Part shown: positions 3,450 through 56,100 of the stretch, piece after piece
How positions within the stretch are numbered: the first letter of the stretch is position 1
Layout: every line of letters starts with the position of its first letter
Translations under genes and position numbers: made by a program
Notes under the pieces: generated by a model
Told to the model about the DNA's origin: nothing
Databases searched by the model: none
What the model saw: only the letters and a program-made list of their open reading frames with translations
Assembly: GCA_000320545.1 (NCBI GenBank)
Contig: ADNK01000414.1
Coordinates: 12,052 to 76,051 of the forward strand
Direction of reading: 5' to 3'
Source: Bigelowiella natans CCMP2755
Taxonomy: Eukaryota; Protista; Cercozoa
DNA: 64,000 nucleotides

Positions 3450-4300
3450 ACATAATTAAATGTTAATGCAATCCAATGAGTAATACACGCGACACAGCAT
3501 ATATGTTAAAATAGATAAAAGCATAGTAAACCTCCACACACATATATACACGCTAGCACGCGGGTTAACTAGCCAAGGTACACGACGCTCTGCGCTGTTA
3601 TATGGCGCATACATCTTAGCTTATAAGCTAGCTAGACATGAAAGCTGCACAAAAAGAAAAGGTACGCTGTCAGTGGGGTATCAGTTGAATTTGGTGATGA
3701 CTTTGATATAGAATCAAATGCCTGGCAAACCTAAATGTGTGCAAAGACAATGTGATATGCAAGTAGGCCTACAATCACGCCATTGTTAGTGCTAGCGTTG
3801 CGACATTAGATGTACTAGTGTTGTAGTCTGCATGCTAGCATGGCACATGATGTAGCGCACATATATATGTCTACATCTAGGTGTGTACATCATGTGCACA
3901 CCTAGTTCACATCGATGTCTAGACGACATCTGGTAGCATCCACAGACACAGGAGGCTTAAAGTAAGACTAAAGCGTGTGATGAATATAACTGTTTATCTT
4001 TTAACGCCTTTGCTATCACTAGAATACGCCAACTAAGCTGATCAATGAGTAGATCGCCACCAATGTGTGCTTTGTACACAATAGCAGCCATGTGTACGCT
4101 GCATGCGCACATGTATGCGACACATAAGAACAAATGAGCAAAGAGTTAGCTCGGACGCAGCATCGTGCTCATCGAGCTAGTGTAGTCGAGCATTGTCAAA
4201 CAATGAAATAATAAGCATGAGAACTGAATGGGGTAAAATAAAATAATTAACGAGGCTAGAAGTCTTTATAATGTCTAGACGAATGACGATGTTGCACTTA
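3450..4300. other. Palindrome-rich (CTAG/CATG/TGCA/AGCT) tract 1 in the convergent gap ABC-F / gene 2
   Basis: Dense short palindromes; CATGCTAGCATG at 3831-3842; 14-bp-arm inverted repeat at 3877-3905; no ORF of 60 aa or more in the track between 3162 and 4426. Edges approximate. Confidence 0.8.
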
Positions 4301-4547
4301 TGAGGTACCCTCAGGGTCCATCAAGCAACCGAGTGACTTTTGAAGCCTGATAATAGAACCAACTTAATGAAGGCAGCAGAAACTGCTCTGCAATATAAAC
4401 ACTGTCCGTCTTGTGACTTTGCTGCTTGACAGGGCTATTTAAGCTGAACGTTGAGTGTGTTTTTAATTTTTCATTGTGGAGGCACACATACTGTTGTTGG
4501 TTTGCGGCTACGACTCGAAAAGCCGCAATTAAAGTTTCATGGAACCG

Positions 4548-5870
4548 CTACTTACTATTATGGCCGCCAGTGATCGTTTGCCACGGATCAAATGAGTCGT
4601 CATCCCTTTCTTGTTGCTGCTTGTGACTTTTTTTTTCTAACTGCTTGATGTCCTTATCGGACTCTCTCTTCGTTTTCTCAGAAGCTCTCTCTATTTGATC
4701 GGTCTCAGCATCTTTCTCGTTTTGGAATCTTTCTCGTTTCTTCTCCTTCTTATGATCTATTTCTTTCTGGACCTTTTTAGCTTCGCGTGCAGCAGCAGCT
4801 TCAGCCTCCTTTATGACCTTTTGGCGCTCAGCCTTTGCGGCGATGCGCCTCTGTGTTTCTTCTGCCTGTTTCCTTGCTTGGTCTGCAACTCTATCCGCAA
4901 ATTCACGCAGTCTTTCAGCCACCTTAGTCTCCCGCACGGCTTTCTTTGTAGCCTCGTCAGCAACAGCGTCCGCTGCATTCTTTGCAATCTGTGCGGCTTC
5001 GTCTGGGGTTAACTTTGCATTAGGTTGCTTGGAAGCGTCGCCGGTGATAGGGGGGGGGATTTCGTCATCCAGTGGTACTGGCGCTACAGCTGGGGCAGGT
5101 GGAGGAGGAGCAGGATCCTACAACAACAAAACCAATAATCAACATAATTCAAAAATTTCGAACACACACATTATCCACATTCAACACATCCAGATATACA
5201 ACAAGAAACACAAAGAACTTCGCTCCGCCCGCATTATTCGCAAGAATATAATTCACCGATGGTGGAGGTGGAGGTGGAGGGGGGGGAAGAGGTGCAGGAT
5301 CGCTTGTGGGGGCAGGAGGCAATGGCTGTGTGAGGCAAACAAGAAAAGATATCCATCAGTATCCGAAAAGTAGGAAAAACAAACAAGACTGATTTGACCG
5401 GAAGTGGATCATCGTCTTCAGAGTCTTCGACATCAAAGTTCGGATGAAAGTGGGGGATGCCATTCATCGTTGTTTTTTGTAGTATAGGACTGTTATAGGT
5501 GTCATTTGAATTTCCAAAGCAGCTCAGATAGAGGACGCACGATACAGCTATTGCTACGAATAATCCTAGCTGCAGGAAACTGCTCTGCGACCGGGTCATA
5601 AAACTGCATTGATTTTTCCTAAACCTTTACAAGAAAGCAATATTAGCTACTTGATTGCAGATATAAAAAAAAATGCAGTACGAAGCTTCTGAGGCTTTGC
5701 AGTTGTGTGGGTCGATAGAACCATATGCAGTTCCGACCACATCAATCCTTGCTCCTGTTGCCTACATAAAGCCATATGAAGAAGACGAACACGTAGCGAA
5801 ACTGCAACATTACTTCTACCTTAGTGTCGATGGTCTTTTTCAACTTCCGCTTTTCGTCGACCCAGACCAT
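4548..5870 (-). CDS. Hypothetical type II membrane protein: short cytosolic N-terminus with YGSI motif, signal anchor, Pro-rich linker, Ala/Glu/Lys coiled coil
   Basis: In-phase exons MVWVDEKRKLKKTIDTK^ATGARIDVVGTAYGSIDPHNCKASEAS^FMTRSQSSFLQLGLFVAIAVSCVLYLSCF..., then DPAPPPPAPAVAPVP and the coiled-coil ORF ending GGHNSK* at 4548. Confidence 0.7.
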
Positions 5871-6743
5871 CGTCTCCGGTCGGGGTTCGTGCTAGGGGGG
5901 TGTCCGATGGGTAGGCACTCCACGTCAATTTTTTTCTCTCTTGATTTCCTCTGTGCGACAATATGGAAAGCAGTTTTCTACGATAAAAGCGATACGTTTT
6001 CTCCAAAACGAGAAAGGCTGTACCAGTACGATTTCTCATGGAATCGGGGGAGCATTTTTAAGCGAGAAGCGGATCGGAACACCCAAAAGGGCCCTTTTTT
6101 TTGTTGGAGATTTGAGGCACGGATATCCCCGGGGACCTACAGCTAGTCAATCCTGTCAAATCTGTAGAGCTTTCTGGTTAAAGTGCCAGCGAACAAGCTT
6201 TTGTCCGATGTTTTCGGTCGAAAAATGCAATAGAAACTTCATGAGTTCGCATGATTGGTCCAAAAGACACACGAATCAGGATTTATTAAGAAATTCTTCT
6301 CTTCTCGTTGTTGAAATGAAATCCATCCATCTGGGATGTTCTCATGCTTTTTTATTAGTTCCAGCTCCTCCTCGCCAGAAAAACACATCGAGATCGATTT
6401 TTACACAATAAATTGTCGGTTAAGAAAAAAAAGACCCGTTTCAATCCCAAACTGTTATTTTTTTTCTGAGATCCGATGACGCAATACATAAATTGTTGGC
6501 ATTTTAATTTTTATGAGTCCGCAACCCGTAGACGTCGACGTTTGGGCCGCGTTACGCCAAAAACCCGCTCGTCTCCTTCATTTCCATTGTCGTACCCATT
6601 GATCACGTATACTTGCGTTCTTGTCCACCCGGTCCGTAACCCCCCCCCATTTAGTCCATTTGGTTTCTGGGCAATTGTGAGATTTTAATGCGGTGGGAGG
6701 GGTAAAAATAGGACTCAATTCGCTTACTACATTTCCTCTACAG

Positions 6744-9015
6744 ATGAATCGTTCCCGTGTTCAAGGAAGGGCCCTGATGGGTATCTTCGCTGCGTGTGCA
6801 TGCGCAATCGCGTTTGTGATGGTAGGTGCCTTTGTTTTATATTCAAACCTGCTGGAAATAAATTCATCCCATCCATAGTGTATAAGCTCAATGCGCCAGC
6901 CACATCTTCAGTCGGGTTTCCCAGGTAGCGCCTCCTATTTTCCATTTATTCAAACAGTTGGGTAAAAACATTCTCACCAGGCACGAAGTCTTTCTCAATG
7001 GCTGGGACTCGCCCGGCAGCGCTCAGGTAATTTTGCCTCGTGATTTGGAAAATTACTGCAAAATGGTAACAATAAGTATGTGTTACCCTTAGGATGAATT
7101 CGATCTCGAAGCCACTGCTTTCACGTGCTGGGTTGAACATAACATTACCACACGTCATCGCAATCGGACAGCGAATTCACTATTTTTTCCTCATGTGTAT
7201 GATTTAGACACATGTCCTTCCTCAAAGAGAAAAGTGGAACGTGCCCCGAACAAGCTCAGAAGAGGCGAAGTCTCTTCGTAAACGCGGCAACTGCAGCTGC
7301 AAGTGCGAACCTATATATTCCATCACATACTGCTGTAATATCCTAACATGGTGCAAATACTCTCTCGTTTAGGTGGTGATTATGACTACGACGTTCTCAT
7401 TATTGGGTAGTCTCACTTTTTTGTTTCTATTAGATGGATGTGTCCCATGTCAAAACCCGAGATTTGTCGATGTGTTGTATGAAATGTCTGAACGCGACCC
7501 GTCTCGATGATAATTCATGTGTAGTTAAATTCAATCACTTTTGTTCGGTAATTGCTAAGATGTGGAGTCGGTGGCCATGGAGCAGCTCTGCATGCTGTCC
7601 AACAGGGTCTCAAAGTAGGTGTGGTTGGGGGCCATGACGTCGGCGGAACGTGCGTCAACCGTGGTTGCGTTCCATCGAAAGCTTTACTTGCAGCAGCTGG
7701 AGAGCTCCATAAATTGAAGTCTCAAGACCACATGAGCGCTCTCGGCATCCAAACAGGCGAGCTGTCATTTGACCGTCAGAAAATAGCCGACCATGCCAAC
7801 AACCTAGCTTCCGCGATTAAAGCAAACCTTCGGAGATCTCTCGAAGCAATCGGTGTTGACATCATCCACGGCAAGGGAACCCTTAAGGATGAGCATACTG
7901 TGGAAGTTGGTCTTCCTGGGCGTGTAGACATCGAAGGTACCGTCACGGCTAAGGATATCATCATCGCAACTGGTTCGGTTCCCGCAGTCCCACCTGGCAT
8001 CAACATCGACGAAGACCGTGTGTTCACCTCTGATAAAGCGCTGAAGCTGGAGTCACTCCCTGAGTGGATTGCTATCATTGGCTCGGGATACATCGGACTG
8101 GAATTTGCAGATGTTTACACCGCATTGGGTGTGCAGGTGACCCTGATTGAGGCAATGCCGACGCTTATGCCAGGCTTTGACTCTGAGATCCGCCGTCTAG
8201 CCCAGCGCGTGCTTGTTGATGGCCGCAAGAGTGTAGACTATCACACAAATGTATTCGCTACCAGAGTAACTCCTACCACCTTTGGTGGCGTGGAGATCGA
8301 GTTGACAGATGCCAGTACAAGGGAGGTGAAGGACGTGATTGAGGTGGATGCTGTTATGGTCGCTACAGGCCGTCGGCCATACACGGAAGGCCTTGGGCTC
8401 GAGGACATGGGTGTTGAAAAGCTCAGGGGCGGTTTTATCCCTGTGAACGACAAGATGCAGGTCCTCGATTCGAATGGAGAGGCTTTCGAAAATATCTATG
8501 CTATTGGTGACGCAAACGGAAAGTACATGCTCGCGCATGCCGCCTCGGCTCAGGGTATCAGCGCTATCGAGAACATCGTCGGGAGGGAAAACACAGTGAA
8601 CCACAGGCACGTACCTGCCGCGTGCTTCACGCACCCAGAGATAAGTTTTGTTGGAGTTGATGAGGATACAGCGCGTAAGGAAGCAGAAGAGGGAGGATAT
8701 GCCGATAAGATTGGTGTCGCGAAGGTCTCCTTTAAGGGCAACTCCAAGGCCCTCGCCATGAAGGAACCCGATGGAATGGCTAAGATGATATACAGGAAGG
8801 ACAGTGGTGAGATCCTCGGCGTCCACATCATGGGTCTTCACTCCGCCGATCTTATCCACGAGGCATCAAACGCTATGGCGGCTGGGCAAACTCTCTACGA
8901 GCTGCGAATGATGGTGCACGCGCATCCAACGGTTGCAGAGGTGCTGGATGAGCTCTTCAAGCATGCACAACTGGAGCATGCAGTGAACCCAGAACCGGCC
9001 TTAGCCATGGCTTGA
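6744..9015 (+). CDS. LPD: Dihydrolipoamide dehydrogenase (E3 of plastid pyruvate dehydrogenase) with bipartite targeting leader
   Basis: [10 protein letters not shown]^[12 protein letters not shown], redox disulfide [53 protein letters not shown]; plastid/cyanobacterial-type sequence. About 90-aa leader [26 protein letters not shown]... spread over five small exons; last exon ~7560-9015. Confidence 0.95.
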
Positions 9016-9649
9016 CTGCCTGGAATAGCAGATATTAGTAGTGACGACCCTAAAACAACATCATCATCGCAGCAACCAACGAAGAAAATAATACAGGAAG
9101 CAGCCGGTCGGAGCGAAGTGAACGAATTTGTACAAAGTAGTAGTAATAGTAGTAGCAGTAGTAGCACTAGCGGAGGTAGTGATTCCTCGCCCAGCAGCCT
9201 AGAAGTAGGCCTGGCAAACGGGAGGGGGAGGACAAAGGGAAAGGATGATCAGCCGACTCCATGGCTTCTTCAAACTCTTAAAAAAATACTGAATAAACTA
9301 CGACAAAATGTCAGATAAAAGCTTCCTCATCAAATCTACCATCATCGTCATCATCACCACCATCGACTCCTAATATCTCTATGCCAATTATTTTCTCTGG
9401 ACTCCAGATCTCAACAACCACAGTTCATCACCATTCATTCGATCGAATCCCCCTTGTTAACTCATCCCCCCCTTTCATCTTTTTCATCATCACAACCACG
9501 GCCATCTCAGTAGATTGTCGTTATCTTCCTGAAGTGGATGTGTCTGTGAAACGAATGAGTGGGCCTATCATCATCCCTGCTGCAGCCTCCTGGGTTATTC
9601 TATAACTTGGTCTTGCATGGAGTTTTCGGATCAATCATTGCAACCGTGA

Positions 9650-9756
9650 CGCTACATGCAAAATAATTTGAAAATGCTGCATACATAACGTGCGTAAATA
9701 GAAAGGTGGTTGTTTACTTGATATTTACGTATATATTGCATAGCTACGTAACTGTA

Positions 9757-9793
<37 letters not shown>

Positions 9794-10900
9794 GTTGAAA
9801 TAATATCTCAATTTTACGCGAGGTGACGCTATGCGTTTTCGTTCGAGCTAGGTGTGCACCCCACACACATAGCATTGGACATCTAGAAATGCCAGTCGTA
9901 GCATCCACGCATAGAGGCTACTTGCTGCATGCTAGCATGTTTTGCAAATGAAATTTGGAGGCCTAGCTAGCTAGGCATTTCATGCAAGCATACTCTAGCT
10001 AGCTACATGTCGACTAGTAGACACTACGATGCATGCATCAAATCGATCTAGGCATCGTCTGTCGGCTCTAGCTAGCATCTAGGCTAGCTAGGGCTGCCTT
10101 TGTTATACGATATGCGATGTACGCGCAGGACTCATAGACTGCTACGACTAGCCAGAGGATGCTTATCTATCTCTCTAGCTCTATACACAGAGAGCGCTAG
10201 AGCGCTATATCTAGCTATATAGGCAGATGCACGGACAACCATGCTAGCATGCATGCAACAATTATGTTGCATGCATATGTTGCATGCATAGTTGCAGATG
10301 TACTAGTCTAATAGTGCTGTGTAGCTAAGCTAGCTAAGCTGCATAGTAGTTTAAACTTTCATCACATTCGTCACATCTCATAGTGGTTTAAGGCAGCTAG
10401 CTAGCTAGGCAGCATGCATTCATATGCTAGCATGTCTAGATGTGTGTGTGACATGTAATGTTCTCGTTTTTCATGAAACTTCTTTTTTGTAAAGCACACT
10501 GCCAGGTCACACTGCAAGAGCACACATGCTCTGATGCTGTTGCGACTGCTTCTCGGCATTATGCACACCCATGCTAGCATACAAGACCATTTAAACCATG
10601 ATGCATCGCAAGATTTGATTCGCTTGAATAAAAATAATATGATTTTCCCTCTCAGTCAACACGAACATGCCAAACAACATCTACGTATTGCTGAGCAGAT
10701 CTGGAGATGTGTAGATGTAGCAACATTATGTGCATGTAGCTTACGCATATACCACATTTGGCAACATCTAGAGTCATATAAGGCTTCGGGCACCATGTAA
10801 TATTTACATACCGTACATGTATATACATTGTGTTTGGCGCACGGTTGTAGTGAAGCTAATTTTATTCTATCCAACAGCTATCATTTATTTGGATTGTTGC
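9650..10900. other. Palindrome-rich tract 2 in the convergent gap LPD / CDS
   Basis: CATGCTAGCATG at 9928 and 10240; (CTAG)3 at 9963 and 10397; many GCATGC, TAGCTA and TCTAGA; (GT)n at 9759-9791. Edges approximate. Confidence 0.85.
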
Positions 10901-11287: not shown

Positions 11288-11969
11288 GGAGATTCGTTGT
11301 GGAATTAGCAAGATTTCAATATTGAAATACAAATATAGGAATCATTACCCTATCTGCTTCACCATTGGTAAGAATAGCGTCACAAATGCGTAAGCAAGAG
11401 GCCCAACAAAGATATAACTATAAGTCAAACATGGGCATTATTAGTCATGGAGCAGTAGCAGTAGGAGGAGGAGGAGGAGGAGGAACGGAGTTCATCATAC
11501 CATGAAAGACACAATGGAAACAACAGAAAACACTGTGAGAAAAGACCTATCGAGACGATCAAGCACGCCTCCATGGCCTGGGAAGCAGTTGCCGAAATCC
11601 TTCACGCCAGCATCTCTATATAGGAGAGAAAGAAGAAGAAGAAGAAGAAGAAGAAGAAGAAGATAGTAACAACAAAATTCGATGGGTGGTGGAGGTGCTA
11701 TATATGTGAATAATCAGAATGCTAGAGCGCATGCTTGACCGTTGTGATGATGGTGATAATGGTGATGATGGTGATGATCGCAGCAAGATTATGCACAACG
11801 AGCTTTTCTTTTGTGCGACAACTGAGACACCTCTTGATCATGGAGGCCATCAAATCGCCCAAAAGGGAGATAACGGAGACCATAAGCCCATACCTGATGA
11901 TGAAGCAAGAATAGCAACAAGAGCAGTGGCTTAGCTTGCAGTTGTTTCCACAATATCACCAATACCAGG

Positions 11970-23211: not shown

Positions 23212-24017
23212 CGATGTATCACAAGAAAAGAAGTAGTAGTTGTGTAAAGAAGAGCGGCAAACATGTAGTGTTTCAATCAACCTCGACTTTCTCAGAGAAA
23301 AATTCGAGCATCCGCTCGGCCTTGCAGAGGGAAGTACACGCATTACAAACGGGGTAAGTTTCGACTGCGCGATCCATCCTATTTTCGTGCCGCAGTGTAG
23401 TGCCAATGATTGCATGAGCAACCGGATTTCTATTACAAGGCGCTTAAAATTAGCAGTTCATTCTCGCGCGAGAAATTTACATCATGAGTACGTTTGGTGG
23501 AGTCGTTGGACTGTGTGTGCTGTTGTGGTTGCTCCGAGTAAATCATTTGAATCTGATGCCCCTCCTCAGCAATACTACGCAGAGAAGAAATCCTACAAGG
23601 CGAGTGTGAGGTAAGTTATGCAGTTTATTCATAAGACGGTATATTTCTTATGATGGGTTGTCTTCGCGTTCTTCGTAGGAGAGTTGATCAAACCGAGTCT
23701 GCAGTAAAAACCAAGATGCTCTATCAGGCATTCTGGCAGGATCTTCGTTTCAAGGAAGGTGTGTGTGTGTGTGTGTGTGTATTTTCAAATCTGGGAAAAT
23801 AATTTGTGGGCGAAGTTTTATGCAATTTGAATTGGGAAGTTGGTGACAATTTGTACCGCCCTGTGCTTTTTACACAGGTGGAAGCTTGAGAGAGCATATA
23901 GGTCACGCCACACAGGACGAATTTTAATTCTACCGAAAAAAAGAATTAGCACAAACGCCACATTTAAACACGCGCGTGCGCGCGTACACACACACATAGG
24001 CACACACACCGATACAT

Positions 24018-24068
<51 letters not shown>

Positions 24069-24171
24069 GCGCAGGGTATATTCTCCTTTGGGTGGGGTTA
24101 CTCTGGGCACGAATCTATATTCATTACGGAGGGCAGCTGTTATACTTAATGGCGCTTCAAGTTAGGTGAGA

Positions 24172-24204
<33 letters not shown>

Positions 24205-25409
24205 GTCATGATGGCGGCAACGAGGCCACAAATAACTTTCTGGATGCGAATAATGAAAATAAGCGCATATCTTCTGCACTCTTGACGGATGATTTCCTAT
24301 CTTGAATAGCATCTACACCAAGGATTTTCTCGTTTACTCTGTACGGCTGACGTACAACAGAGACATCATGCTCCCAATACATTTCTGTGGGATAGTAATC
24401 GTCGGGTAGGTTGATCGTATGCTTCGAATCTAGTTGTAGATATACCTTGCTACTTTTACCCGATATAACTCGTGTACGCTGTGAGACTGTAGCCGTCGCT
24501 TCCTCTACAAACTTGAGCTAAAACGGTGATTTTTATTCTAAGCTGGGGCGCGAATATATTTCTCTTCGGAATGGTATTGTTGGCAATGCTTTTGACCAAG
24601 GTAGAGCAAGTCACGAACCTTGTCTTTCTGCAGAGAGGCTTGATGTTGTGCGCGCATCTGAGTATCTTGGTACCACTAAAAAACACTAACATTGTGTTTC
24701 ACATTGCAGTGGCTGATCGGATTTTATCCGGATTGGATATCGGACGTCATGATCGTATATGGTACGGTGTAGTTGAGAACGTATTGACGCAAACACTCTT
24801 TTCCAATCTTCAGCTGTCGCTTTATTAATTGCAAAATTAGCTTGTGAACGTGGAGTACCCCTATTCCATAATCATACCTGAGAGATTTCTATCGGCAATA
24901 CAACCGCAGGCATTGTCATGCTAGTGGATCCCCTTCTAATTGCGGGAGTCGATGTTTTAAACGGCAACACCAAATACGGTAAAATTCCATCAGCTTTATA
25001 CCGTTCATCTTCTGAACTGCCTTTACCGTGAAATTTAACCAATATAGGGGATGCTTTCTTACTGTACACGTACTACGTGGACCTTGAGGTAATCATGGTT
25101 ATTTCTTCAATTAATATGCGATTTTTCTAGTGAAGACCGATGGGGTGTGTGTCGAGGTTTCACGTTTATAAATCCTCAGGGAAATGGCCTTCAAGGAATA
25201 TTCATCACAGTCATCTGTTACGCAATAGAAATTGTTTTCGCTTTAGGTTCCCTAAATTCATTACACATACCTTAACTTCTTGATAACAAGAATTCGAAAC
25301 CGATGATTCTCTTCCTGCAACACATTTCATTACCACGTCTTCAGTATCACGCCAATATTCATCTACATTTGTCACACACACACACACATTATGTGTGTGT
25401 ATATATATA

Positions 25410-26703: not shown

Positions 26704-27640
26704 TCTTTCACGTCATGCAACCTGCAAGTTCATCGGATGGTGTGGGATTGCGTGCAAGTCAGGTGCAAAACAATGCAACAAATCCAAGATTCGCCTCAAG
26801 CTGCGTGAATGAATGAAGATGGAGCATGTTGTACATCGACCTCTGCATGCTGCCACAAACTGCAGATTGCTGAATGGCGATGCTCTTGCATGTGTTGGCG
26901 TTGAGTGCATCGCGTGCATCGACCATTGCTGCATGGCACGTGAACTGCAGCTGGTGTGCACGGGTGCAGTGCTGCTGCGCTTGCACGTATGTGTGGCTCT
27001 GATGATTGCATCCGATCCGGTCTGCCTTTCGATTCGTTTGCAAACTGGTCCTGCACAGCATCGCGGAAGCCACAAGTAGCAAGTGCCACTGAAGCTCTTG
27101 TCCACCTCTACAACGCGAACACGCGCGGTAAACAACAAGCTTGGAACTGGACGAAATTGGGTACGTGCTGCGTCTGAGTCCGACCTCAAACCTGGCAAGC
27201 GTGTGACAGCTTGATTGCACGTAGAGGGGCGGGAACGCACGACGCTAGCCAGCACGTTGCCTCGATCGCATGAGCTTGCAGGTCATCCATTTTGTGCCCT
27301 CTGTGGCCTGCAGATCGATATACGAATCTCCTCGTCAGTCAACGGCCCTGCTAGCCTGCTAGCCTGCACCAGCAGTTGGAAAAGAATTTGAATTGAACTG
27401 CATGAATTGTCATCGTGTTCGTTCAGACATTCCAACAAAATGTGAATGAATGAATGAATCACTTCTAATGCTTGAATCGGAAGGATACGATCATCAGACG
27501 TGCCAACTGAACCAGTCTAGCAGTGCACAATGCAAGCGCTGCTGACAAGCTGGAGCACCTCAACCGGCGGTGAAAGAAAGAAAGGAACTTGATGAAGGAC
27601 TACATTGCTAGCATTGGTGAGCAGAACATGCAGGAACAAG
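26704..27640. other. TpA-depleted, TGCA-rich degenerate coding-like segment (possible decayed mobile element or pseudogene)
   Basis: By hand about 8 TA and about 20 TGCA in 26704-27300; broken reading frames unusually rich in Cys/His; no recognisable domain. Confidence 0.5.
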
Positions 27641-28420: not shown

Positions 28421-28469
<49 letters not shown>

Positions 28470-28690
28470 GTGTGTGTGTGTGTGTAATACAATAATTAAA
28501 CGTAGAATGAATTGTTAGTTTGTTGGAGACTTTCTCTTTCATTGTCTGGGCAAGTTTGGTGAACGTTGTTTTCCACATAGCTCCAATACTCTCGCTTTTC
28601 CCCGCCTATTTTGCATAATAAAAATATGTGCGTCGAAAAATATATCTTCATTCTACTAACCCACCAAACTAACCCACCAAACCAACCCAA

Positions 28691-28729
<39 letters not shown>

Positions 28730-28736
28730 TCAGAGT

Positions 28737-31907: not shown

Positions 31908-31909
31908 TA

Positions 31910-34859: not shown

Positions 34860-34890
<31 letters not shown>

Positions 34891-34929
34891 CTGCACATCA
34901 AGATAGGAAGAAGACACACAAACGGCATA

Positions 34930-34966
<37 letters not shown>

Positions 34967-35660
34967 GATATACCTCTTTCCGCTGCTGCCATGTCCTTGA
35001 TGCTCACAGGGGGGGCCGAGGGCATCAGCGGAGGTGTGTGGGGAGGGAATGTTGTCTGAAGGCGAGAGAAAGACAACGCATAGTGCGAAGAATGCCCCGT
35101 GATTAAGATGTCATGCACATCGAAGACTGGGTTATTGACGTTGGTAAACGTTATCGTGTAGCTGAAGCTTCCCACATTCATCTTTTGAGATGAGATCAGG
35201 AGATAGGCCACACAGTTGTTCCCTTGAGTGTCTTTATGTTCCTTTTCACCGGTCTTTCCACCCACGGCATCGTTGCTAACATTACGCTGACGACACCGTA
35301 TTCCAGGAGGGTTCGTCACAATGAGTATGTGAGCGGAGGAGGGGGAGGAGGAGGAAGAAGAAGAGGGGGAGGAGGAGGAGGGAGGAAACGAGCCGGAATG
35401 GCGGCCGGTCATCCTATTCTTCATGATTGAAGCAGCAGAATGATGAGCACCAACAGCATCCGTGGGGAAGGGATCCCCTCGAGGAGCGACAACACCGCCA
35501 CCGCTCCTCTGCTCATTTCTGCCTTTGTCTGCGCCCATCATTGCAACACCCCGCTTGCCGTCTTTCTTTTTCTTCTCCTCTTCGGATATTAACGACGACG
35601 GCGATGATGACGACTTCATCGGCAAGGTCCCAGGTATGTAACGGAACTGACGAGATGAGA

Positions 35661-35693
<33 letters not shown>

Positions 35694-38600
35694 TACTAGT
35701 AGTCGTCTTTGGCGGGATTGCTTCTATTGTTGACGATGCCCGTGGTGGTGATGAGCCATCTAGCTTTGTCGTCTCTCCATCTCGATGTCCTCTGCCTCCT
35801 TGCTGAGCAGCATCCTTCCCTTCGAGTGTTCCGTAGAGCGAAAATGCGGTTGGAACCGACTCCCTTTTGACGCGGAAGGTAGCAGGCACACATGACAGAT
35901 TCACCATCTCGATGGGAATGACCTTATCTTGCCACCCATCGCAGTATCCGATTCTGCCAAGGTCATACCGGGTGAACTTCGGCCTCGATCGTGACAAGCA
36001 GGCGTGCCCAGATACTACCACCACCCCGCTGGTTTGGATCTCAGAGAACCTCGAATCTGTCATCATCTCGCTGCTGCCGAATGTCGGTGATAGTGACGAA
36101 GGCGACGATGATGATGATGATGACGACGACGACGACGATGTTCCCAGGTGCGGAATAGAAGAAGCTCTCTCGAACAGCACCCAATAGTGAAAGGGGAGAC
36201 GTGATCCACTCATCAAAGCCTCCTGCTCTTTCTCCATTTTGCCGTACTTTCGTGAGAATTTCACAGTAATTATAGCCACCCGTTTCCCGCCGGGTGGCAG
36301 GGAAATGGCTTCTCCACAGAGACGCACATCGCCGAACTTCCTCACGTTCAGTTTGTGTTCTGCCGTTCTTGACTGGCTGCGAGGAGGATGATGAGCCGTC
36401 GCATGATTTTCTTCTTTGCTGCGTGTCTGCCCTACTTCTTCTTCTTCTTCTTCTTCTTCTTCCCATGTGACAAATACCTCAATAGCACCATCACCATCAC
36501 CACCACCACCACTACTACTACTACTACTACGTTTTCTTCCGCCATTACTACTGTCGTCATTCTTCGTCTTCTCTTCCTCGTTTTCGTTCCCCTTTCCTCC
36601 TCCTCCCCACTCCTCCTCTTCCTCAACCCGAGCCAGTACCTCTTGCTCGTTATTCCATGTCCATAGCAAGGGCCGCAAACACAATGCTTCCCGAGTCGTG
36701 TTCTCGACGATTATGCGTTTTGTAGACGGCTGAACCGCCTCTACGTGGAGTCTAGAAGAGGAGGAGGAGGAGGAGGAGGAGGGAAGGCCAGATTGAAGAT
36801 GCCATTCATCTGGGTGGTCAAGACCATAGTAGCTGCTTCCTTTTCGTTCCTCACGATCGACCTCAAGAGCAACATCACCATCATCGTCGTCGTCGTCATC
36901 TTCTTCATCACCATCATCATCGTCATCGTCTTCTTGCGGCTTCGAACCGTTGAGACGACGAGTCTTCCTCCTCCTCCTATTTCCTACTATCCTCCTCCTT
37001 ACAACGAACCTCTTTGTGAAGGTGGAGCTATTTGACTCTTCCTTCTCCTTGATCGTTCTCGCACACCCCAAAGCATTCTGCAGGACTGGTTTTAGGCGTT
37101 TCGTGAAAATACACACTACGTCGTCGTCGTTGCTGTTGTTGCTGTTGTTGTTGTTGTTGTTGTTATTGTTGTCTCTATTCGGACTTTCCTCCTCGTCGTT
37201 TTCTTCCTCTTCTTCTTCCTCGTCCTCATCTTCCTCATCAGTTGCGTCATAGCCATTATTGACGACATTCTTGGCAGCGGTAGGGTGCTCTACGCCTTCG
37301 TCGCTGGTCTTTTCATCATGACCATCACCATTATCATCGCCATTCTCGTCTTCCTTGCGGTGGTGGCGCTTGTTCTTCAGAGAATTGTGCAAAGTCCGCG
37401 GTTTTGCTCCCATTGCATTTGCGCTGATAGCTTTTTCAGCCTCTTCTGATTTCTGCCCACTTCCGGGATCTCTCAACGACGCCTTCGTTATGGTCTCCCC
37501 CCCCTTCCCTTTTATTCTCTCCTTCCTTGGTTCGTATGGAGATGCCATCACGTGAATATCACCCAAATAGACATCACAACGTGACGCTGTAGAATGAGAT
37601 TCTCCGCCTTTACGAATGTCGTCGCTAGCATTACCACCACAACCGCCGCACGAAGAAGACGACGATGACGTCCACGCCAGAGGTAGCGTTCTGTGGAAAG
37701 CAATCGTTCCAGGATTCACAAGCGCGGTCAGGTGCAACACAAATGGTGAGGTGAGAGTTGTCGTATTCCAGATCTGGATTGTAGCATGAAAGACACCCAT
37801 CTTCCTCACGGTCACTTCTACAGGCATTACTATCCTGCTGCTGTTTGGCTTTTCCCTGTAGCTGCTGACACTGGTGGCGGCAGCGTATTGGGAGGAACTA
37901 AGTTTCTCATCATCTTCCACCAAGACGTCACCGCCATTTGACAATTCACCGCCGCTATTACTACAACCACTGATGCGAGACGTGAAAGGCGCTAGAAGGC
38001 CCTCAGCTTGACCCATTCGAATGGCTGACGGCTGTGAAGGCGTGCATCGGTAGGACAACGGCAATCCCTTCGTCATGTTTGAAACTTCTAGCGAGAAGCG
38101 GAATTTGGCCACATCTCCAAGGTACGCTTTGTAACCGAGATGGATTCTCTTTTCTTGCTGCCTTTGCTGCTGCCGGTGCGTTTCTTCGTTAAGATTCTTT
38201 GAGTTTGCAGTCAGAGAACCACTTATTCTTCTTCCATCTGTACCCCGCCGGTGTGTTGCACTTGTTCTTTGCTGCTGCTGCTGCTGCTGGGACCATGGAT
38301 TACTTGGCTGAGTGAAAATCACTTCCTGTCCTTTCTCTTCTCCCTCCCCCCCCACATCGCTTCCGGGCAACGATACGTGGCATTGTAGCCGAGAGTATGC
38401 TACCCTCCCCACGAGCTTAACAGTGTGCGCGGATAGTAGCATCACACAGGCATTCTCTGCTCCTCCACTCTTTCCCCCCTCCATTCTGCTCTTCTTCGCA
38501 ACAGGAACAGTGATTGTTTCCGGGAAGGAGCTGTTTCGCGTGGCCAAGGCAAGAACGTCGTTAGGAGACTCTTCGACTATCTCAAACCGAATGCCCACGG

Positions 38601-41099
38601 AGAACTCACGGTAATCTCCTCGCTTTGCCTCTGCTGCCGACAACTGTGGCCTCAGCCTAACGAAGACGGCATTATTGGGGGATTCTGCCGTGAGGACGAG
38701 CTTCGATGGTCGCAGCGGCTTGCAGCACAGAGGGTCAAGGAACAGCTCCACTTGCGAGGAGAGTGTGGTTCTTACGCGGACAACTACGGGTTTCTCGTCC
38801 GTCTCCGCCCGCCGGCTCCTTATAGGGATCCGTACCACTTTCATCTCTTCCTCAACTAGCGAGAAGGCCACACTTCCGACGTCAATTACCCCGTGGCTGG
38901 GAACCCCAGGAAATGCGAGGTACTTTGGCCAATCGAGCTCCGCCTTCACCATCAACTTATAGTACAATCCGGAGGAGAGCAACCGTGGCCAAGCTTGCTG
39001 CTTGAGTCGCGGTCCTCCTCCTCCTCCTCCTCCTTTGCCGATTGAAGACGACGACACAGGAAGGACGCTGGTACACACCAGATAGCATGGCACTGAAATA
39101 GCTGCTGGAGTGCCAGGGATCTTACGGAACTTGATATGTAGTGATGGGTGGTAGTTGTTGTTGTTGCTTCCTCGTGTATCATCTCCTTCTTTCTCTATTT
39201 TATGATCGCCTCCCTCTCCCCTTCCTCCTAATTCCTTCCTCGCCATCTTTATGGACGCGAATGCCTGGACAGAATTTCCTTGTGGTACGACGAAGACTGA
39301 TAGATGATGATTGTCAGCATCGGCAGCAGCAGTAAACTTACAGAAGGGTGAATGCCTAAGCTGTGGGAGTGGTGCGTAGGTCTCGAAACAACCGTTGAAA
39401 TCTGTTGTAATGCAGCCCAAATTTATAGTGGAAGAATGCCTTTGCTGTTGATGATCACAAGCCACATTATTTTCGAGCCTCCCACTTAACGCAACAGTCG
39501 TTGCTGCTGCATCGTTTAAGAGTAATCTGCACTCGTGTGAAGAAGACCTTACTACTCGAAATAGCATGGCTGGCTGCTGCTGCTGTGGTTGAGCAGTATG
39601 CTGTTCTCCTCCTCCTCCTCCTCCCATCGCTGATTCCTCCCCTCCTTCGTCCACAGTCATGATCAAATAGCCAATGACATTGGCTGCTGCTGTTGCTGTT
39701 CCTGCAAACTTTGTTTTCTTCTCTGCCTTCAACCGATTTTGTAGCATCCATTGCTGCTGCCGCTGTAATGCAGAGCTGTTGTTACCGCCGCTGCTGTTAT
39801 TGTTGTTGTTATCTGGCCTCAGGTGACAGAAAACCCTTCTGACCGAGTTTCCACGAAGTTTGACTGTGATACTGTTTGCCGTCCATCTGAGTGTTTTCTC
39901 CACCAGAAACCACATGGAAGAATCCGGCGATGATGCTGTCGATGATGCCTTTGGCGGTGATTGGGACGGCGATGGCGATGGCGATGGCGGCACGATTTCT
40001 CCCTCTTGCGGAGATGAGGGAGCGGAGCCGGGTAGAAATGCTGGGGTTCCTGGCGTCAAGGGAGGCTGCTGCTTTTGCTGTTGTTGTACCTGGTCTTGGT
40101 CCTGCTGCTGCTGCCGCATATTTATAGTCGGCGCTGCGTGAACGAAGTTAACGGTGACAGCTAGCGAACGCGACATCGTAGAGCGTACCAAAAATTCAGC
40201 ATGCAACATTCCTTCATCCCCTGCTTCCAGAGGAGCGTACTGATGCTGCTGCTGCTGGTGGTGGAGGTGGTTGGAAGGGGCTTGATGTTGGGGCGGTGGT
40301 GCAGCAGTAGTAAAGAGGAGTTGTTTGATGATAGCACCAGCATCATCCCTATTATCGACGGGGATCATTACTATATCTTGGATGGCCGTAGAAGCCTTTG
40401 GAGATGACGGAAGAAGAAAAGAAGAAAGGTGCTGATGCTCTTGCTTTTGCTTCAACTCCGGTTGTTGTTGTTGTTGTTGTTGTTGTTGCAAAGATCCCGC
40501 TGGCGTATTATTGACATGTCCATCAGAAGCATCCGTCCCCCCCCCCACCATCATCATCGCATAGGGTTTCTTAGCAGTAGAATGGCGATGCAGGTGGTTC
40601 TGCTGTTGGTGCTGCTGCTGCTGATGATAGCGTGTCGAGGATGACGGGGAGAACCGCACCGGTATGGACACCATCACGGGACTGCTTTTCGGCCTGAGCG
40701 AGGCAACCGAAGAGAGAGCGATCGTCATGTTGCTAGAGGTACTGGATTTGAAATAGTTTGGAGAAGGAGGAGGAGGAGAAGGTGTCGTAGCCATTCCTTG
40801 CCCGTTCTAGCAGAGAGCACCACGGAAAAGCAAGGATAGCAAACAAACAGAACGCACAGCAAATTAAAATCAGATATAGCCCCGACATTCCAACCACTCT
40901 GGAAAAACAGAATACGATTCTCTACATCTATGGCCGCGAGAAGCCGCTGTGGCGGAATTATAATAATCGGCCACGTGTTGAAAATTTTATAGGGATATCA
41001 TCATCTACAAATGTAGTCACTTAACCACAAAATAAAATGACTTCTTTCTGCCTCCGGTGGGTGGAGAAACCACATCAACCCGCACATAAAACTGTATGC

Positions 41100-41167
<68 letters not shown>

Positions 41168-44100
41168 CACATACATCTTCAAAGAGGCTCGGGTTGTATT
41201 CATCCATTGTCAGCTCCGTAGGTTCGCTGTGAAATGAGGAGACTGGCGATAACGACGGTGCTATTCCTGCAGGAGGGGGAGTGGTGGAGGTGGGTGGGGA
41301 GGGGGGACTCGGTACGCTTCTGCTTAAATGGCGGTTCTGGGAATGAAAGTGGTTGATGCCCTTTGACAAAGCACTTGGGATTATTCTTTTCTTTTCTCCG
41401 CCGCCTCCGCCGCTAGAAATATCGACCTGTAGCACGCTTCCTCGTACAGGCAGTTTTTGGGGGGAGGGCGCGATGATTTGCAATGGCAGTGCTTTTGAGG
41501 AAAGCGACGAAACATCCTTGAGAAAGTCACGTACAATGCCATGGGCTTGTGAGTTGCTAGATGGGAACGATGAAAGAGGCGGAGGCGGAGGCGGAGGCGG
41601 CGGCGGCGGCGGCACGTCCATCTCCCCCTCCTCCTCCGGTTGTGAGGGTAAATGATGATGGTAACGATGATGGTAGTGCTGGTGGTTATGAGTATGCTGC
41701 TGCGGGGAACGACGATGGTGAATGTTATAACTAAATGAATCACTATCTGCAGAAACTGGGGAGTTTTGGGACGAAGTTTCGTAGGTTGAGGCGGCGGAAG
41801 AATTTGGTCTGCTCTTCTGCGGTATCACAATACGCAGGCTATTCTTTGCCCCCCCATCCAGAGATTCGCCGCCGTTTGGGCCCGTAATTTTTTTGGTGTT
41901 GCTGGTGCTGCTGGTGCTGCTGGTGCTACCGCGCCGCTTTACAAATTTCGTCAACATGCTAGTACTACTACTGCTACAAGTACTACTGCTACCAGCTGCT
42001 GTTGTAGTGGGGGGTGGCACTCGAACACAATACTTAATCTCCTTAGCGGCATCAAGATTTTTCTCCTCATGGACTATCATGAGCCCTTCATAGGTCCTCA
42101 TCACCAAACTTTGATCTGTGTGCCGCTGTCCCTCCATCATAAGCTTACGGATGTTTGATGACGAGAAGGAGGAGGTCAGCGCAGAGTGAGCGGGCGGGTA
42201 GATGGGAGAAGACTTTGCTGATGATGGAGAGGATGGTAACGACGATATAATCTGATGTAGCTCAACATAGGCCTCGATCACTTGGATTGCGCTCGGGGGA
42301 AGCGTGAAGGAGATCTTATTCTCGTATATGTTCTTGTCACCGTTCTGATCTTTCTTCTTCGTCTTCTTCTTCTTCTTGTTGTTGTTGTTCTTCTTCTTTG
42401 ACTGTTGCTGGTTGTTACTTGCTGGTGCTGCTATCCCTGCAGTACCAGGCTCGGCACCAGCCGCTGCGATGATGCCGCCATCGTCGTTATTCCCCTCGCT
42501 TATTCCGCTACGAAGAACCCTGCCTTCCTCCGCCTCCTGTGCAGCCAATTCAAGGAGGCGTTTTTCAATCTTCTTCACCTTCTCTTTTTTCCGTTTTCGC
42601 AGAGCGACTCGAAGCTTGAGCTGCAGCTTCTCTATTTCTTCTTCCCTCAGCATGGTCTCATGCGCGGAGGCTGTCAGGTGCTTCTGGCCCATCCTGAAGA
42701 AAACTCTTGCCCGAACATGCTGATTTGGAGGATGCGGCGAATTTGATATATTGTCTACTTCTCGGTTGTGCTTCTTCTTCTTCGCTTCCTCCTCCCACCC
42801 CCCAAACATACTGCCACCACCAGAAATGCTTCTCTCTTCCTCGTCCTCCCCCCCCTTTTTCAATCTAGCTCCACCGCCCCCCCGACGATGCTGAGGGTGG
42901 GGTTGCTGCTGCAGCTCCGAAGAGACCATTTTCAGACGATTCTCGCGGCCGATGATAACGAACCGCCTTTCTCGGTTTGTCACGTTTTTCACCAAGATTC
43001 TCTGAACGTTGCTGCGGCTCTCTATGCAGCACTTGCCGAAATCGAGCCTGAGCCGCTGTATCCAGAAGTTCTCCCTCTCCTTCACACTCGCTTTCACGTT
43101 GAGGATAGCACTCCCGCACTCGGGATTCAGGATGTTGACGAAGCGGATGGTCTCCCGGAACTTTCCGGGAAAACTGGGCGAAAACTCGAACGGAACTTCA
43201 CACTCTGCCATTGGATTCAAAATGCCGCCCACACTCAGGGCGTTGGGAAACTTGACATCTGAAGAAGATATCGACCCTGACTTTTCTATGCGGAAGAGAA
43301 GTGGGCTGTCGCAGGGGTTCTGCAGCTGCAGCTTGCGTTTGCGTACACCTGCGCCGATGCCTTGAATCTCTCCAAAATGAAGGTTGGTTTGGGAGAGCGT
43401 GGCGATGGAACGGCAAACTTTCGTCTGGAGCGGGATCATCAGCACCGGAGCGTCACCACGGTGATAATAATTCTCCAATCGACGCTGAATGCTGTCTCTC
43501 TTGTTCGGGGGCAGAGGTGGGAGTTGTTGTTGTTGTTGTTGGTACTCTTTCTTGTTGGAAATGTAAGGCTTATGCTTCTCTTGCTGCTCTGTTAGGCTTT
43601 TCTCCGTCGGTCTTTCGACTACTACTGCTAGATTTCTCCGCAATGGCTGAACCAAGGAGGACGAGGAGGAGGAGGAGGAGGAGGAAGATGATTCTGCTGA
43701 TGCAGATGCTGATGGCAATGATGATGATGGTGACGAGGGCAGTCCATGCTGCAGAGAAGGGTGTGCATGCGACGTTGGTGGGGAAGATGTTGAACCAGCA
43801 GTAGCTGGAGAAGTACCAATAAGTAATCCATTGCTGCTGCTGCTGCTGCTGCTGTTGCTGTCGGTAGCGTTCATTCTCGCTGATGAAGCTTTGTTGACAG
43901 CTGCTACACCCATCATATTCTTCTTCTTCTTCCTCCTCCTCCTCCTCTCATCTTTCGCATCATCATCATCATCATCATCGTCACCACCACCACCACCACC
44001 CAACGCCTGGCTGGTCTCCATCAGTTGATGATCCAAAGAGGTATCACCGTCCCTCGCACTGAGAAGGAGGCTTTTGAGCAGGGATTTATCATAATCAACC

Positions 44101-45082
44101 ATGCGGATGGATATCGAGCCTTTCGCATTCCTGAAACGCCGGCTGATCCAAGACACCTCGCCCTGCATGCTGTACACCGCAAACACCCGCACCTTCTGAT
44201 CCCCCGGCAGCATCACTCGACATGATGATGATGATGATGACGACGACGAAGCTAACGATGATGATATCGGTAGAAGCTCTCTCTTCTCAATCGATTCTGC
44301 AATCCGCCGCTGTCGTCTTAGCTCGCGGTCTACCAGCTCCTGATCAGAGCTAGGATCCAGGGCGTTTGGAGGCCATCCTTGGTGCTCGATGCTGCTCTCA
44401 TCCGTGGTGGAGAAGACATCATTACAAATCTCTTCCTCCAGTATCTTGCTCAGCTTGCTTTTGTCGCCGCTTAAAGACCCGATGTCATTCGCGGCTACAG
44501 AAGAGGATGCTGATGATGATGACCGCTTTCGACCATAATTGTTGCTGGGTTGGAGGTGGTGAAGGTGCTGCTGATGATGATGGTGTTGAGAATTCTTATG
44601 AGGCTGCTGCTGCTGCTTTTCGTCAGTTGGCTGCTCCTCTATCATCTCTTTCTGCGTCCAGTGAAGATACAGTGATATGTTATGCGGATGTGACACCTGA
44701 TAGCACAGCCAGAGCATCATGCTGTTAGTGCGAGCCCAAAGATCATCAAACAAACATCAACCTACAAAGACTACTACTACTCGGCGCATTCTGTATATGC
44801 ATGCAATGCTCAATAGGGGCGGCGGTGGGGATATTAACCGACAAATGTAAGTTATAATCTTAGTTTGCGACTAGAAAAACGCCCTCATCTTGTTCTTGTT
44901 CTTGTTGTTGTTCTTCTTCTATTACTACTACTACTACTACTACTACTACCGCGAAGGACAGCTTGAGTGTGGAGCTTCTTGTGTTTTGAAGTGTGAATAC
45001 CCGAACCGAGGGACATGACGACACCAAAGCACCTATATTGTGTGTATGCCGTTTATGCAAGCACATATATGTGTACACATGT

Positions 45083-52329: not shown

Positions 52330-52403
<74 letters not shown>

Positions 52404-53971: not shown

Positions 53972-54894
53972 ATGGAGCAAATTCGTGATTATGCCGAGAC
54001 ATTGATAACGAAAAAGTGCTACGTGGACTTGTTCGAGTCGTTCATCTTCGAAAAGGAATGCGTCGAGATATTAATGTCTAAGGGATTGGGGCTGGCTATT
54101 GTTGTGGGTTCCGCGATCATGAAGCTGCCCCAAATCATTGCCATCCTTCCCGGGGATACCACCGGACTATCCCTTCCAACCTTTGTGATGGAATCCATTA
54201 CGTTCTCCGTTATCGTCATGTAAGGAACGTTCATCAAATATTCATCATTCTCACACCTCCACACCAGTTCGATAATAATGCAAGTAGAAATCCCTCTGTC
54301 GTCCATTAATCCTAACCCTTTATATCATCGACACAAAGGTACAACTACTTGCAAGGCTATCCAGTCTCCACGTGGGGGGAAAACTTCTTTCTCCTTCTAC
54401 AGAACTACATCATCATTTTTCTTATCCTTATCTACCGCAAACAACTTTTTAGTCTATGGACAATCAGTGGGTTGCTACTGTACGGCACGGGGATTTGGAT
54501 GATCTCTACAGGATTTCTAGAGGAGGAACTTAAGCCCTTGGAATTACAGATACGCTCCCAGAGTACTGTCATCTCTGCTGTTGTGCTCGCAGGTCCTGGC
54601 GCCCTGGAATCTATCTTAGCCCTGTGTACAAATGTAATGGCGCCAATCAGCCGAGTTCTGCAAATATACAAAAACTGGAGTGAAGGGTCGACTGGACAGT
54701 TATCGCTTCCTACCACATTTTTGGCTGCGGCGGGGTCCGTTGTTCGCGGCCTGACGATCTTGAAAGAAGTCCCCGATCCAATTTTGCTTCGTGCGGTCGC
54801 ACTATCCGTGTTGCTAAACAATATTGTCCTGGCTCAAATTATCTTCTATAGATTTATCTCAACGGGAAAAGTTGAGAAGGATAAGAAGGATTAA
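53972..54894 (+). CDS. MPDU1: Mannose-P-dolichol utilization defect 1 (PQ-loop) protein, 2 exons
   Basis: SKGLGLAIVVGSAIMKLPQI, YN..GYPVSTWGENFFLLLQN, SRVLQIYKNW..GSTGQLS, GSVVR..T.LKEV.D, LNNIVLAQIIFY; C-terminal KKD (dilysine-like). Confidence 0.92.
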
Positions 54895-54899
54895 TGATC

Positions 54900-55055
54900 G
54901 AAATGTTGAAGTTTGAAGCTAAGTAAAGAGCTGCGATAGTTTGTGCACTATTCCTAGATGTATGTCTATTATCGTAATGTTTACCACATCTAGACATGAC
55001 CAATAAAATATGTCTAGGTGCACTAGTGCATAAGAGGAATGCAAAGTAAGAGCTA

Positions 55056-55090
<35 letters not shown>

Positions 55091-56100
55091 CTACTACTAC
55101 TATCTTAGATCTAGAGATCTGGAGAACAACAATGCCTAGTCTCTAGATACAGATACGTCAGACGTACGCTGAGGCAAAGTGAGTCCTGTTTTAGCACATC
55201 TCTAGATCTAGAGATCTATACTAGTACACATCACTATCTACCCTGTACTTTGGCATGCTAGCATGTGACGTACATAGTACAGCCTAGACAACATGCTAGC
55301 ACGCGCTTTGTTAGTTTAACAAGAACACCAGTAGGCTATCTTTGCTATACCTAGATATTATAGCTAGCTAGTACTAGAGCATAGCAGTGAAGTAGGTCTA
55401 GACTAGTAGAGGTGCGCTGTATATATAGCTAGATAGCTGGCAGGCTAGCAGGCTAGCAGGGCTAGCTAGCCAGCGATGGTACTTACTATGGCTTATATAT
55501 CATACGTACGCTAGATACGGCGAATTGTTGCTCGCACTTGCTCATCACTGGATCATCTTAATATTTAATATGCGTATGCGTTCATGTCTCTAGCTAGCTA
55601 GAGCTAGTGGAGAGCTGTTCAGCTGTTCTAGTCTAGTACGTAGTGTGTGCATGGCTAGATTAGCTAGTTAGCCAGATGGTTAGACAGCTAACAAATCAGA
55701 GCCGGTCTTGATGCAATGCAAAGCTGAACGCTGAACGTAACATCTCGTTACTGCTGCAACTTTGCACAGCTAGATAGCTAGAAAGCTAGCATGACCTGCA
55801 TTATAGTCTATAGCAGTTACCAGTACTACGTACAGCAGGCGTGCAAGCTAGCTATATAGCGTGATGTGGCATGTATTACTTTTGCAGCACAGTTTTATAT
55901 TTCATTGCAGATACAGACGCGCGATTGCGTGAATAAAGCGTTAAGTACAACCTGCCTGTGTAACATAGCATATGCTTACTAACCAATAAAATAAAATTGA
56001 AATGGCAGCACGACCGTGCATTACCAGCTATGCTAAATCGACTATTGTACTAAGTACTGACTCCGTGCTATCTGCTTACTTCTCAGTTCTGGCATTAATT
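54900..56100. other. Palindrome-rich tract 5 in the convergent gap MPDU1 / kinesin
   Basis: 18-bp perfect palindrome ATCTCTAGATCTAGAGAT at 55198-55215; TGCACTAGTGCA at 55019-55030; CATGCTAGCATG at 55254-55265; (CTAG)3 at 55590; 12 TA steps in the 60 bp from 55321. Confidence 0.88.

Follow-up and report, generated by a model that had tools for sequence, protein, structure and literature searches.

An 8-bp insertion unit with a CTAG core in spacer DNA beyond gene 3' ends of Bigelowiella natans

Excision of Tc1/mariner transposons leaves a footprint in which both TA duplications stay in place with 2-3 nucleotides of the transposon ends between them. The piggyBac elements make a 4-bp staggered cut, duplicate TTAA and excise precisely to a single TTAA, and bacterial elements of the IS630 family insert at CTAG and duplicate TA. 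Here we describe a short insertion unit that shares features with each of these, found in a 64,000-nucleotide stretch of the nuclear genome of the cercozoan Bigelowiella natans CCMP2755, a chlorarachniophyte alga (NCBI GenBank assembly GCA_000320545.1, contig ADNK01000414.1, positions 12,052 to 76,051 of the forward strand; hereafter the window, with positions counted from its first letter). The unit consists of CTAG with the same 4-mer on either side (N4-CTAG-N4), which we call a perfect scar, and in the window it occurs in five CTAG-rich spacers, or tracts (T1-T5), located past the 3' ends of genes.

The scars resemble Tc1/mariner footprints in that both target copies survive around a few fixed nucleotides, leaving a short scar with no element inside. 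They differ in having a variable 4-bp duplication of the form M-N-N-K with no TA requirement, in their CTAG core, in being far more uniform, and in having no known parent element. With piggyBac they share a 4-bp stagger, and the logic by which complementary 4-nt overhangs ligate without synthesis is borrowed below for a CTAG overhang; piggyBac is TTAA-specific and scarless, whereas the B. natans sites are scarred. The CTAG tetranucleotide is common to these sites and to IS630, but for IS630 it is the target, while here CTAG is the inserted core and another 4-mer is duplicated. Base J, at the convergent strand-switch regions of trypanosomatids, likewise marks places where transcription units converge, but it is a modified base without a motif of its own, while the signal in B. 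natans is plain sequence produced by insertions.

No description of such scars emerged from literature searches that paired B. natans with CTAG, with footprints or with intergenic transposons, and the tracts go unmentioned in two recent genome papers on chlorarachniophytes (bioRxiv 10.64898/2026.01.13.699255, PMC12730881). The first of these papers reports a TpA-directed hypermutation, which is compared with the tracts below; it mentions neither CTAG nor these spacers.

The scar, its empty site and its target rule

Identical 4-mers flank 32 of the 205 CTAGs in the window (0.4% expected), and, dinucleotide microsatellites aside, no other central tetramer in the window has such a flank duplication. 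Over the 103 kb of sequence that was read directly and used for scans of core tetramers and terminal inverted repeats (TIRs), the proportion with duplicated flanks is 13.2% for CTAG and at most 3.8% for 21 other cores (below 2% for most); three-of-four flank matches around CTAG are 2-fold enriched over the same 103 kb. Only the 4+4 spacing is enriched, with no variants of 7 or 9 bp. All 32 perfect scars are within the tracts and the other 59 kb of the window has none, a confinement to spacers past gene ends that exceeds 100-fold relative to the other non-coding DNA of the window.

Some scars occur in tandem, as (CTAG)3 or as double units with CAGG, CCTG or CATG, and nested events can be resolved by iterative peeling (e.g., at 55198-55217, ATCT first and AGAT second). 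Peeling removed 2, 8, 3, 6 and 12 scars from T1 to T5 as these had been drawn in an earlier, sequence-only reading of the window, compared with 0.01-0.09 in shuffles. Together with the 32 perfect scars, the tracts contain 20 decayed copies with one flank mismatch (1.7 expected) and 20 with two (6.1 expected); counting decayed copies, the scars explain roughly 75 of the 103 CTAGs in the tracts.

One scar can be compared directly with its empty site. Contig C467 (85079-85388; 82% identity) carries a non-coding paralog of 27179-27516, the segment that forms the left edge of T3; the letters of this paralog are known from two pattern-search matches of 57 and 45 nt. The flanking pieces align without gaps at 95% and 91% identity, and homology runs on past the scar at 27513. 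At this scar (27513-27524, CAGT-CTAG-CAGT) the window reads AACCAGT-CTAG-CAGT-GCACAA and the paralog AACCAGT-GCACAA, with a single CAGT. The difference is thus a clean insertion of 8 bp that duplicated 4 bp, at a site without a pre-existing repeat (n = 1 for clean empty sites). A second difference is found at 27347-27366, where the window has the double scar CCTG-CTAG-CCTG-CTAG-CCTG and the paralog has one 8-bp unit fewer. Indels of 8, about 7 and 5 bp separate the two copies, and shorter matches to 27443-27514 (78-84% identity) are present on four more contigs. Judged by these alignments, 27179-27516 appears either to belong to a small dispersed repeat or to be a segmental copy of some age, and to reside within a convergent spacer.

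The duplicated 4-mers are diverse (23 different ones among the 32 sites, mostly single occurrences) and follow a clear rule. When the 32 sites are symmetrised, the 64 first bases of the duplicated 4-mer are 29 C, 25 A, 9 T and a single G; position 4 is the mirror image of position 1, and the bases next to the duplication are enriched for G and C. The preferred target is thus two-fold symmetric, 5'-M-N-N-K-3', with C > A > T at position 1 and G almost never. Pattern searches of the 91.4-Mb assembly, in which the window is C3323:12052-76051, returned 3828 scars with a CATG duplication (control, 7), 569 with AGCT (control, 9), 134 with TGCA (control, 6) and 11 with GTAC (control, 9, i.e., control level). 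The same 4-mers occur 54, 55, 58 and 34 times, respectively, in the tracts of the window, all four being similarly common there, and CATG and GTAC scars differ 350-fold. This two-fold symmetric preference points to a putative dimeric enzyme making a 4-bp staggered cut, and speaks against slippage and random breakage. The target rule also explains why GCTAGC, TCTAGA and ACTAGT, but not CCTAGG, had been picked out by eye in the sequence-only reading.

With CATG accounting for 6 of the 32 window scars, the 3828 CATG scars extrapolate to a genome total of roughly 20,000. A search for CATGCTAGCATG with exactly one mismatch gave 2851 genome matches (control, 115), which on a single-burst model implies a scar divergence of about 5-6%; on that estimate the scars would not be brand new. 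In metagenomes the double scar was matched by 22 contigs; most of these are (CATGCTAG)n microsatellites with 34-72% GC, and the result is uninformative on relatives.

Spacers, transcript ends and flanking genes

The five tracts, with T3 taken from 27340 rather than from the 27640 of the earlier reading, comprise 7.3% of the window sequence and contain 103 of its 205 CTAGs (binomial p = 1.7e-60). CTAG density is 14.5-30.8 per kb in the tracts vs. 1.8 per kb elsewhere, and counts per 500 bp peak at 7-22 in five places, with about 1 elsewhere. The palindrome-rich tracts noted from the letters of the sequence are thus real; as originally drawn, they are 12.7-fold enriched in CTAG, 2.5- to 6-fold enriched in GCTA, TAGA, ATGC, AGCT, GTAC, CATG, ACAT and TGCA, and 4- to 8-fold depleted in purine or pyrimidine runs such as GGGA, CCCC and GGAA. 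The view that they are not copies of one sequence is also supported: the tracts do not align with one another, have neither sequence nor spacing in common, and T2 matches only itself in the 91-Mb genome. Neither do they resolve into fragments of one transposon family, an outcome that the earlier reading had named as fatal to its own proposal, or into one dispersed repeat family, given that T2 is single-copy and only the T3 left edge has a paralog.

Two transcript contigs of the Joint Genome Institute (JGI) align to the window at 99.9-100% and locate the scars relative to transcription (transcript ends here are the ends of these contigs, not mapped cleavage sites). The first represents a plus-strand gene (6599-9652) for a plastid-type dihydrolipoyl dehydrogenase (DLD) with 8 exons and a stop codon at 9013-9015. 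T2 (9653-10900) begins right after its transcript end at 9652, and contains 29 CTAGs, the first at 9848, and 7 perfect scars from 9928, which is 276 nt past the transcript end, to 10432. The second represents a plus-strand polycystin-channel-like (PKD-like) gene (29817-32078; stop codon at 31905-31907) whose transcript contig ends at 32078. T4 (32079-32680) follows, with 5 perfect scars at 32115-32510, the first of them 37 nt past the transcript end, and a last CTAG at 32545. The 3' untranslated regions (UTRs) of the DLD and polycystin-like genes contain 2 and 1 CTAGs, respectively, and zero scars. In these two cases, T2 and T4, the scarred zone is untranscribed DNA beyond the transcript ends. 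With the first scars at 276 and 37 nt, there is no shared sequence or structure at a fixed distance from the cleavage site, as a terminator would have. The motif GGGAAAATCA, present near two 3' ends, is not enriched.

Families of the flanking genes were sought by Pfam scans of about 50 short open reading frames (ORFs), which resolved some of the flanks. To the right of T2 is a minus-strand exon (11725-11955) that matches the cytidylyltransferase family near its C-terminus (CTP_transf_1, E 5e-4; CarS-like, E 6e-4; below the Pfam curated cut-off), and T4 is faced by a minus-strand ORF of 711 amino acids (32726-34861) with no known domain. T1 (3450-4300; 14 CTAGs, perfect scars at 3549 and 3831) is preceded by plus-strand exons of an ABC-F-type ATPase (1-3280), identified by eye from ABC motifs in the ORFs at 1-447 and 2080-2274; the last plus-strand ORF (3161-3277) comes from the codon model. 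On the other side of T1 is a minus-strand terminal ORF (4551-5117) with the highest codon score of any short ORF and no Pfam match. T5 (54900-56100) has 37 CTAGs and 12 perfect scars at 54986-55660, nested and double ones included, and is located between the last exon, with stop codon, of a plus-strand gene for a PQ-loop protein (54316-54894; PF04193, E 4.5e-6) and a minus-strand gene for a kinesin with its motor at the C-terminal end (56240-59129; P-loop, switch I and switch II exons; PF00225, E 3e-16). T3 (27340-27958; 9 CTAGs, 6 perfect scars at 27347-27867) adjoins on its right a minus-strand gene for a COMM-domain (COMMD) protein (27962-29088), with the HN domain at 28795-29088, the COMM C-terminus at 27962-28111 and the stop codon at 27959-27961.

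Of the five junctions, four (T1, T2, T4 and T5) are convergent on both sides. Homology on both sides supports three convergent junctions, and for the right side of T1 the evidence is the codon score alone. Elsewhere, home-made codon and dicodon models were dropped as evidence for strand, as the verified kinesin exons scored near zero. The gene models are tentative over roughly 11-27 kb and 45-54 kb; convergent spacers were compared with divergent ones, and introns served as a further contrast. Two verified divergent gaps contain 3 CTAGs in 1.5 kb (5118-6598) and none (29089-29816), and eight transcript-verified introns contain none in 657 bp, which bears out for these regions the claim that head-to-head gaps and introns lack the tract texture.

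The broader claim, that a tract marks every convergent junction, holds on both sides for T1, T2, T4 and T5 and for the right gene only at T3, and it would fail at 23720-24205. This is a probable further convergent junction with no CTAG, between gene models that are predicted only: on the right a terminal exon on the minus strand (24209-24517) for which the donor/acceptor pair is good, on the left a plus-strand donor at 23611. The ORF at 24209-24517 had no match in a representative search, and a 24-nt exon probe had no match among metagenome contigs. The gap contains (TA)22, (TG)n, (CA)n and CG-alternating stretches. Provided that the gene models are right, a convergent spacer can thus be filled by alternating purine-pyrimidine DNA without scars.

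Several features of the neighboring genes are apparent. The DLD protein is 99% identical to a JGI transcript-derived protein and 88% identical to the DLD of Lotharella globosa. Its transcript has a separate 33-nt 5' UTR exon (6599-6631 and 6743), and its seven introns, of 51-152 nt, are all 5' of a single 2.1-kb terminal exon. The 711-amino-acid ORF next to T4 is one of three very long minus-strand ORFs, with those of 1991 and 1250 amino acids, that are located in a GC-richer block (32726-44753; 50-56%) and have no Pfam domain. They are parted only by an overlap and a 200-bp gap with (TA)n, and may make up one giant gene of about 3900 amino acids; a database look-up for the 1991-amino-acid ORF gave no record.

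Alternating purine-pyrimidine runs

The scars account for only part of the tract texture. After removal of the perfect ones, CTAG still occurs 65 times vs. 22.7 in dinucleotide-preserving shuffles (z = 10.8), which also supplied the expected counts of other palindromes. GTAC is moderately above the shuffles (z = 3.5), CATG and AGCT are weakly so (z about 2), and TGCA, GCGC and ATAT are at composition level. The description of the tracts as built of palindromes therefore has to be narrowed, and applies clearly to CTAG only. Alternating purine-pyrimidine runs of at least 8 nt, pure microsatellites excluded, comprise 14.8% of tract bases vs. 3.6% elsewhere (4-fold), and all strongly enriched 4-mers unrelated to CTAG are alternating ones. 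CATG, TGCA, GCATGC and GTAC in the tracts are by-products of these runs, which probably represent decayed (TA)n and (CA)n microsatellites that would have retained their alternation because transitions preserve it. Short tandem duplications (4-13 bp) are also enriched in the tracts, in line with unconstrained DNA.

A recent preprint describes, in B. natans, a TpA-directed A:T to G:C hypermutation of foreign DNA (bioRxiv 10.64898/2026.01.13.699255). Directly left of T3, 26704-27340 has no credible ORF and rho values of 0.29 for TA, 1.52 for CA and 1.80 for TG, a composition that matches the published signature. The likeness lies in the shared organism, in the TpA-poor, CpA/TpG-rich DNA that abuts T3, and in the fact that such transitions would preserve alternation; the difference is that the process, as presented there, makes point transitions and not 8-bp insertions, and that CTAG itself includes TpA. 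In supplementary Table S2 of the same preprint, 7 of 10 de novo insertions of at least 2 bp in mutation-accumulation lines end in ACA (GACA, CAACA, ACA, ACACA, CATTACA and two 11-mers ending in AACA), and a multinucleotide change TGGC -> AACA is listed in the same table. These entries resemble a stereotyped signature of short insertions. In the window tracts, alternating 4-mers that contain ACA are enriched.

Runs of (TA)n with 6-33 units are present at 14 sites in the window (e.g., 24021-24064, 52334-52399, 59400-59439), about every 4.5 kb and mostly outside the tracts; [AT]n repeats have been said to be largely absent from B. natans relative to Amorphochlora amoebiformis (PMC12730881). Elsewhere in the assembly, contig C3736 starts with a (CCCTAA)n run (L002:12-59) and probably represents a chromosome end, the same repeat being the telomere repeat of A. 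amoebiformis, TAACCC (PMC12730881).

Origin and meaning of the scars

We consider it probable, though far from certain, that the scars are excision footprints of a cut-and-paste DNA element with 4-bp target duplications. A duplication of fixed length (32 sites), an empty site (one) and a two-fold symmetric target preference are all as expected of such footprints. The enzyme would cut its target with a 4-bp stagger, preferring M-N-N-K, and excision of the element would leave four terminal nucleotides between the two target copies. As in Tc1, each end of a CT...AG element could contribute two of these. Alternatively, each donor flank could keep a self-complementary 4-nt CTAG overhang, and the two would anneal and be ligated without trimming; direct ligation of such overhangs would explain why the scars are uniform and variant footprints are lacking. 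The tracts themselves are, on balance, likely to be spacer DNA between facing gene 3' ends in which scars and alternating runs have built up. For their confinement we favour targeting to untranscribed DNA, or tolerance or access only there. Selection alone is an unlikely cause, since introns would take up an 8-bp scar without harm.

Several observations weigh against this account. End-joined excision footprints are usually heterogeneous, and the B. natans scars are uniform. In the 103 kb there is no TIR-bounded element with a 4-bp duplication (TIR or CTAG...CTAG pairs are at chance level). Flank mismatches exceed core mismatches by more than point decay would produce (excess 18 vs. 3.5; 2:1 expected), and perfect scars total just 16-96 bp per tract. 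Next to the COMMD and PQ-loop genes (T3 and T5) the scars start only 81-92 nt past the stop codons, and some may be inside 3' UTRs. A search with the ORF at 26392-26700 gave weak, repetitive matches only and did not identify a left neighbor for T3. Only eight DDE-transposase orthologs have been counted in B. natans (PMC12730881), and none of the 21 de novo indels from mutation-accumulation lines in the supplementary tables is a +8 CTAG event (bioRxiv 10.64898/2026.01.13.699255).

Some of these points favor a serious rival to the transposon reading, namely that the enzyme is not that of a mobile element but a nuclease or transposase that is host-encoded or domesticated. It would make 4-bp staggered breaks in untranscribed convergent spacers, to be followed by fill-in and joining via a fixed CTAG. 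Such an enzyme would fit the uniform scar without 7- or 9-bp variants, the failure to find a parent element in the 103 kb, the strict confinement to spacers past 3' ends and the symmetric target rule, as for a dimeric enzyme, as well as the few transposase genes reported in the genome (PMC12730881). The same tabulated set of indels, with no +8 event among 21, counts against this rival too (bioRxiv 10.64898/2026.01.13.699255), and plain 4-bp tandem duplications are merely about 2-fold enriched in the tracts. Furthermore, we are aware of no repair pathway by which a fixed tetranucleotide is added, and a trapped type II topoisomerase leaves plain 2-4 bp duplications without an insert. All told we regard the rival as unlikely, and equally so its corollary that the scars record a cellular process, e.g., breakage under torsional stress from converging transcription. 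We likewise hold it unlikely that the scars, instead of being relics of an ordinary selfish transposon, record a hit-and-run element or a domesticated transposase directed to untranscribed convergent spacers through chromatin state or torsional stress, with repair via the self-complementary CTAG overhang.

A functional strand-symmetric element, the proposal of the sequence-only reading, is improbable. Whether it ended transcription from both sides, formed a boundary or was the target of a symmetric modification, it would have CTAG and its other palindromes kept by selection, and it would suit the location of the tracts between convergent genes and the CTAG cores that seemingly decay less than their flanks; alternating purine-pyrimidine runs, moreover, are generally able to adopt non-B structures. 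Against such an element, the tracts have no alignable sequence or common spacing, the duplicated 4-mers are diverse, and where transcript ends were mapped, in two cases, the scars begin after them and not at them. Whole scars have been gained or lost between paralogous copies, CTAG is entirely absent from a probable convergent junction, and with scars removed only CTAG is clearly, and GTAC moderately, above composition. Among the four candidates put forward in that reading, the discrete 8-bp insertions and the empty site fit a local mutational footprint, while the three versions of a cis-element find no support. Replication slippage or microsatellite-like expansion of CTAG repeats, with no specific enzyme, could draw on the tandem forms, on the (CATGCTAG)n microsatellites in metagenome contigs of unrelated organisms and on the paralog difference in copy number of an 8-bp unit, but it is very improbable and already largely refuted by the clean empty site without prior CTAG or repeat. 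The 23 different and mostly single duplicated 4-mers also count against it, as does the 350-fold CATG/GTAC gap, for which it does not account.

If the transposon reading is correct, the B. natans genome carries tens of thousands of identical 8-bp footprints of an undescribed mobile element or transposase-like enzyme, whose target rule would be clear and whose confinement to DNA beyond gene ends would be striking. The scars would then provide a handle on a new type of transposon or end chemistry, and a sequence-only marker for untranscribed spacers in a roughly annotated genome. They would also warn that palindrome-rich 'elements' found where genes meet can reflect past insertions rather than signals. 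Should a hit-and-run element or domesticated enzyme be responsible, the class of footprint would be new, as would this example of targeting to convergent spacers, and the roughly 20,000 scars would make a genome-wide map of transcription ends. Taken together with the TpA hypermutation recently reported for this alga, the scars suggest that incoming DNA is stored and degraded in the convergent spacers of its compact, intron-rich genome.

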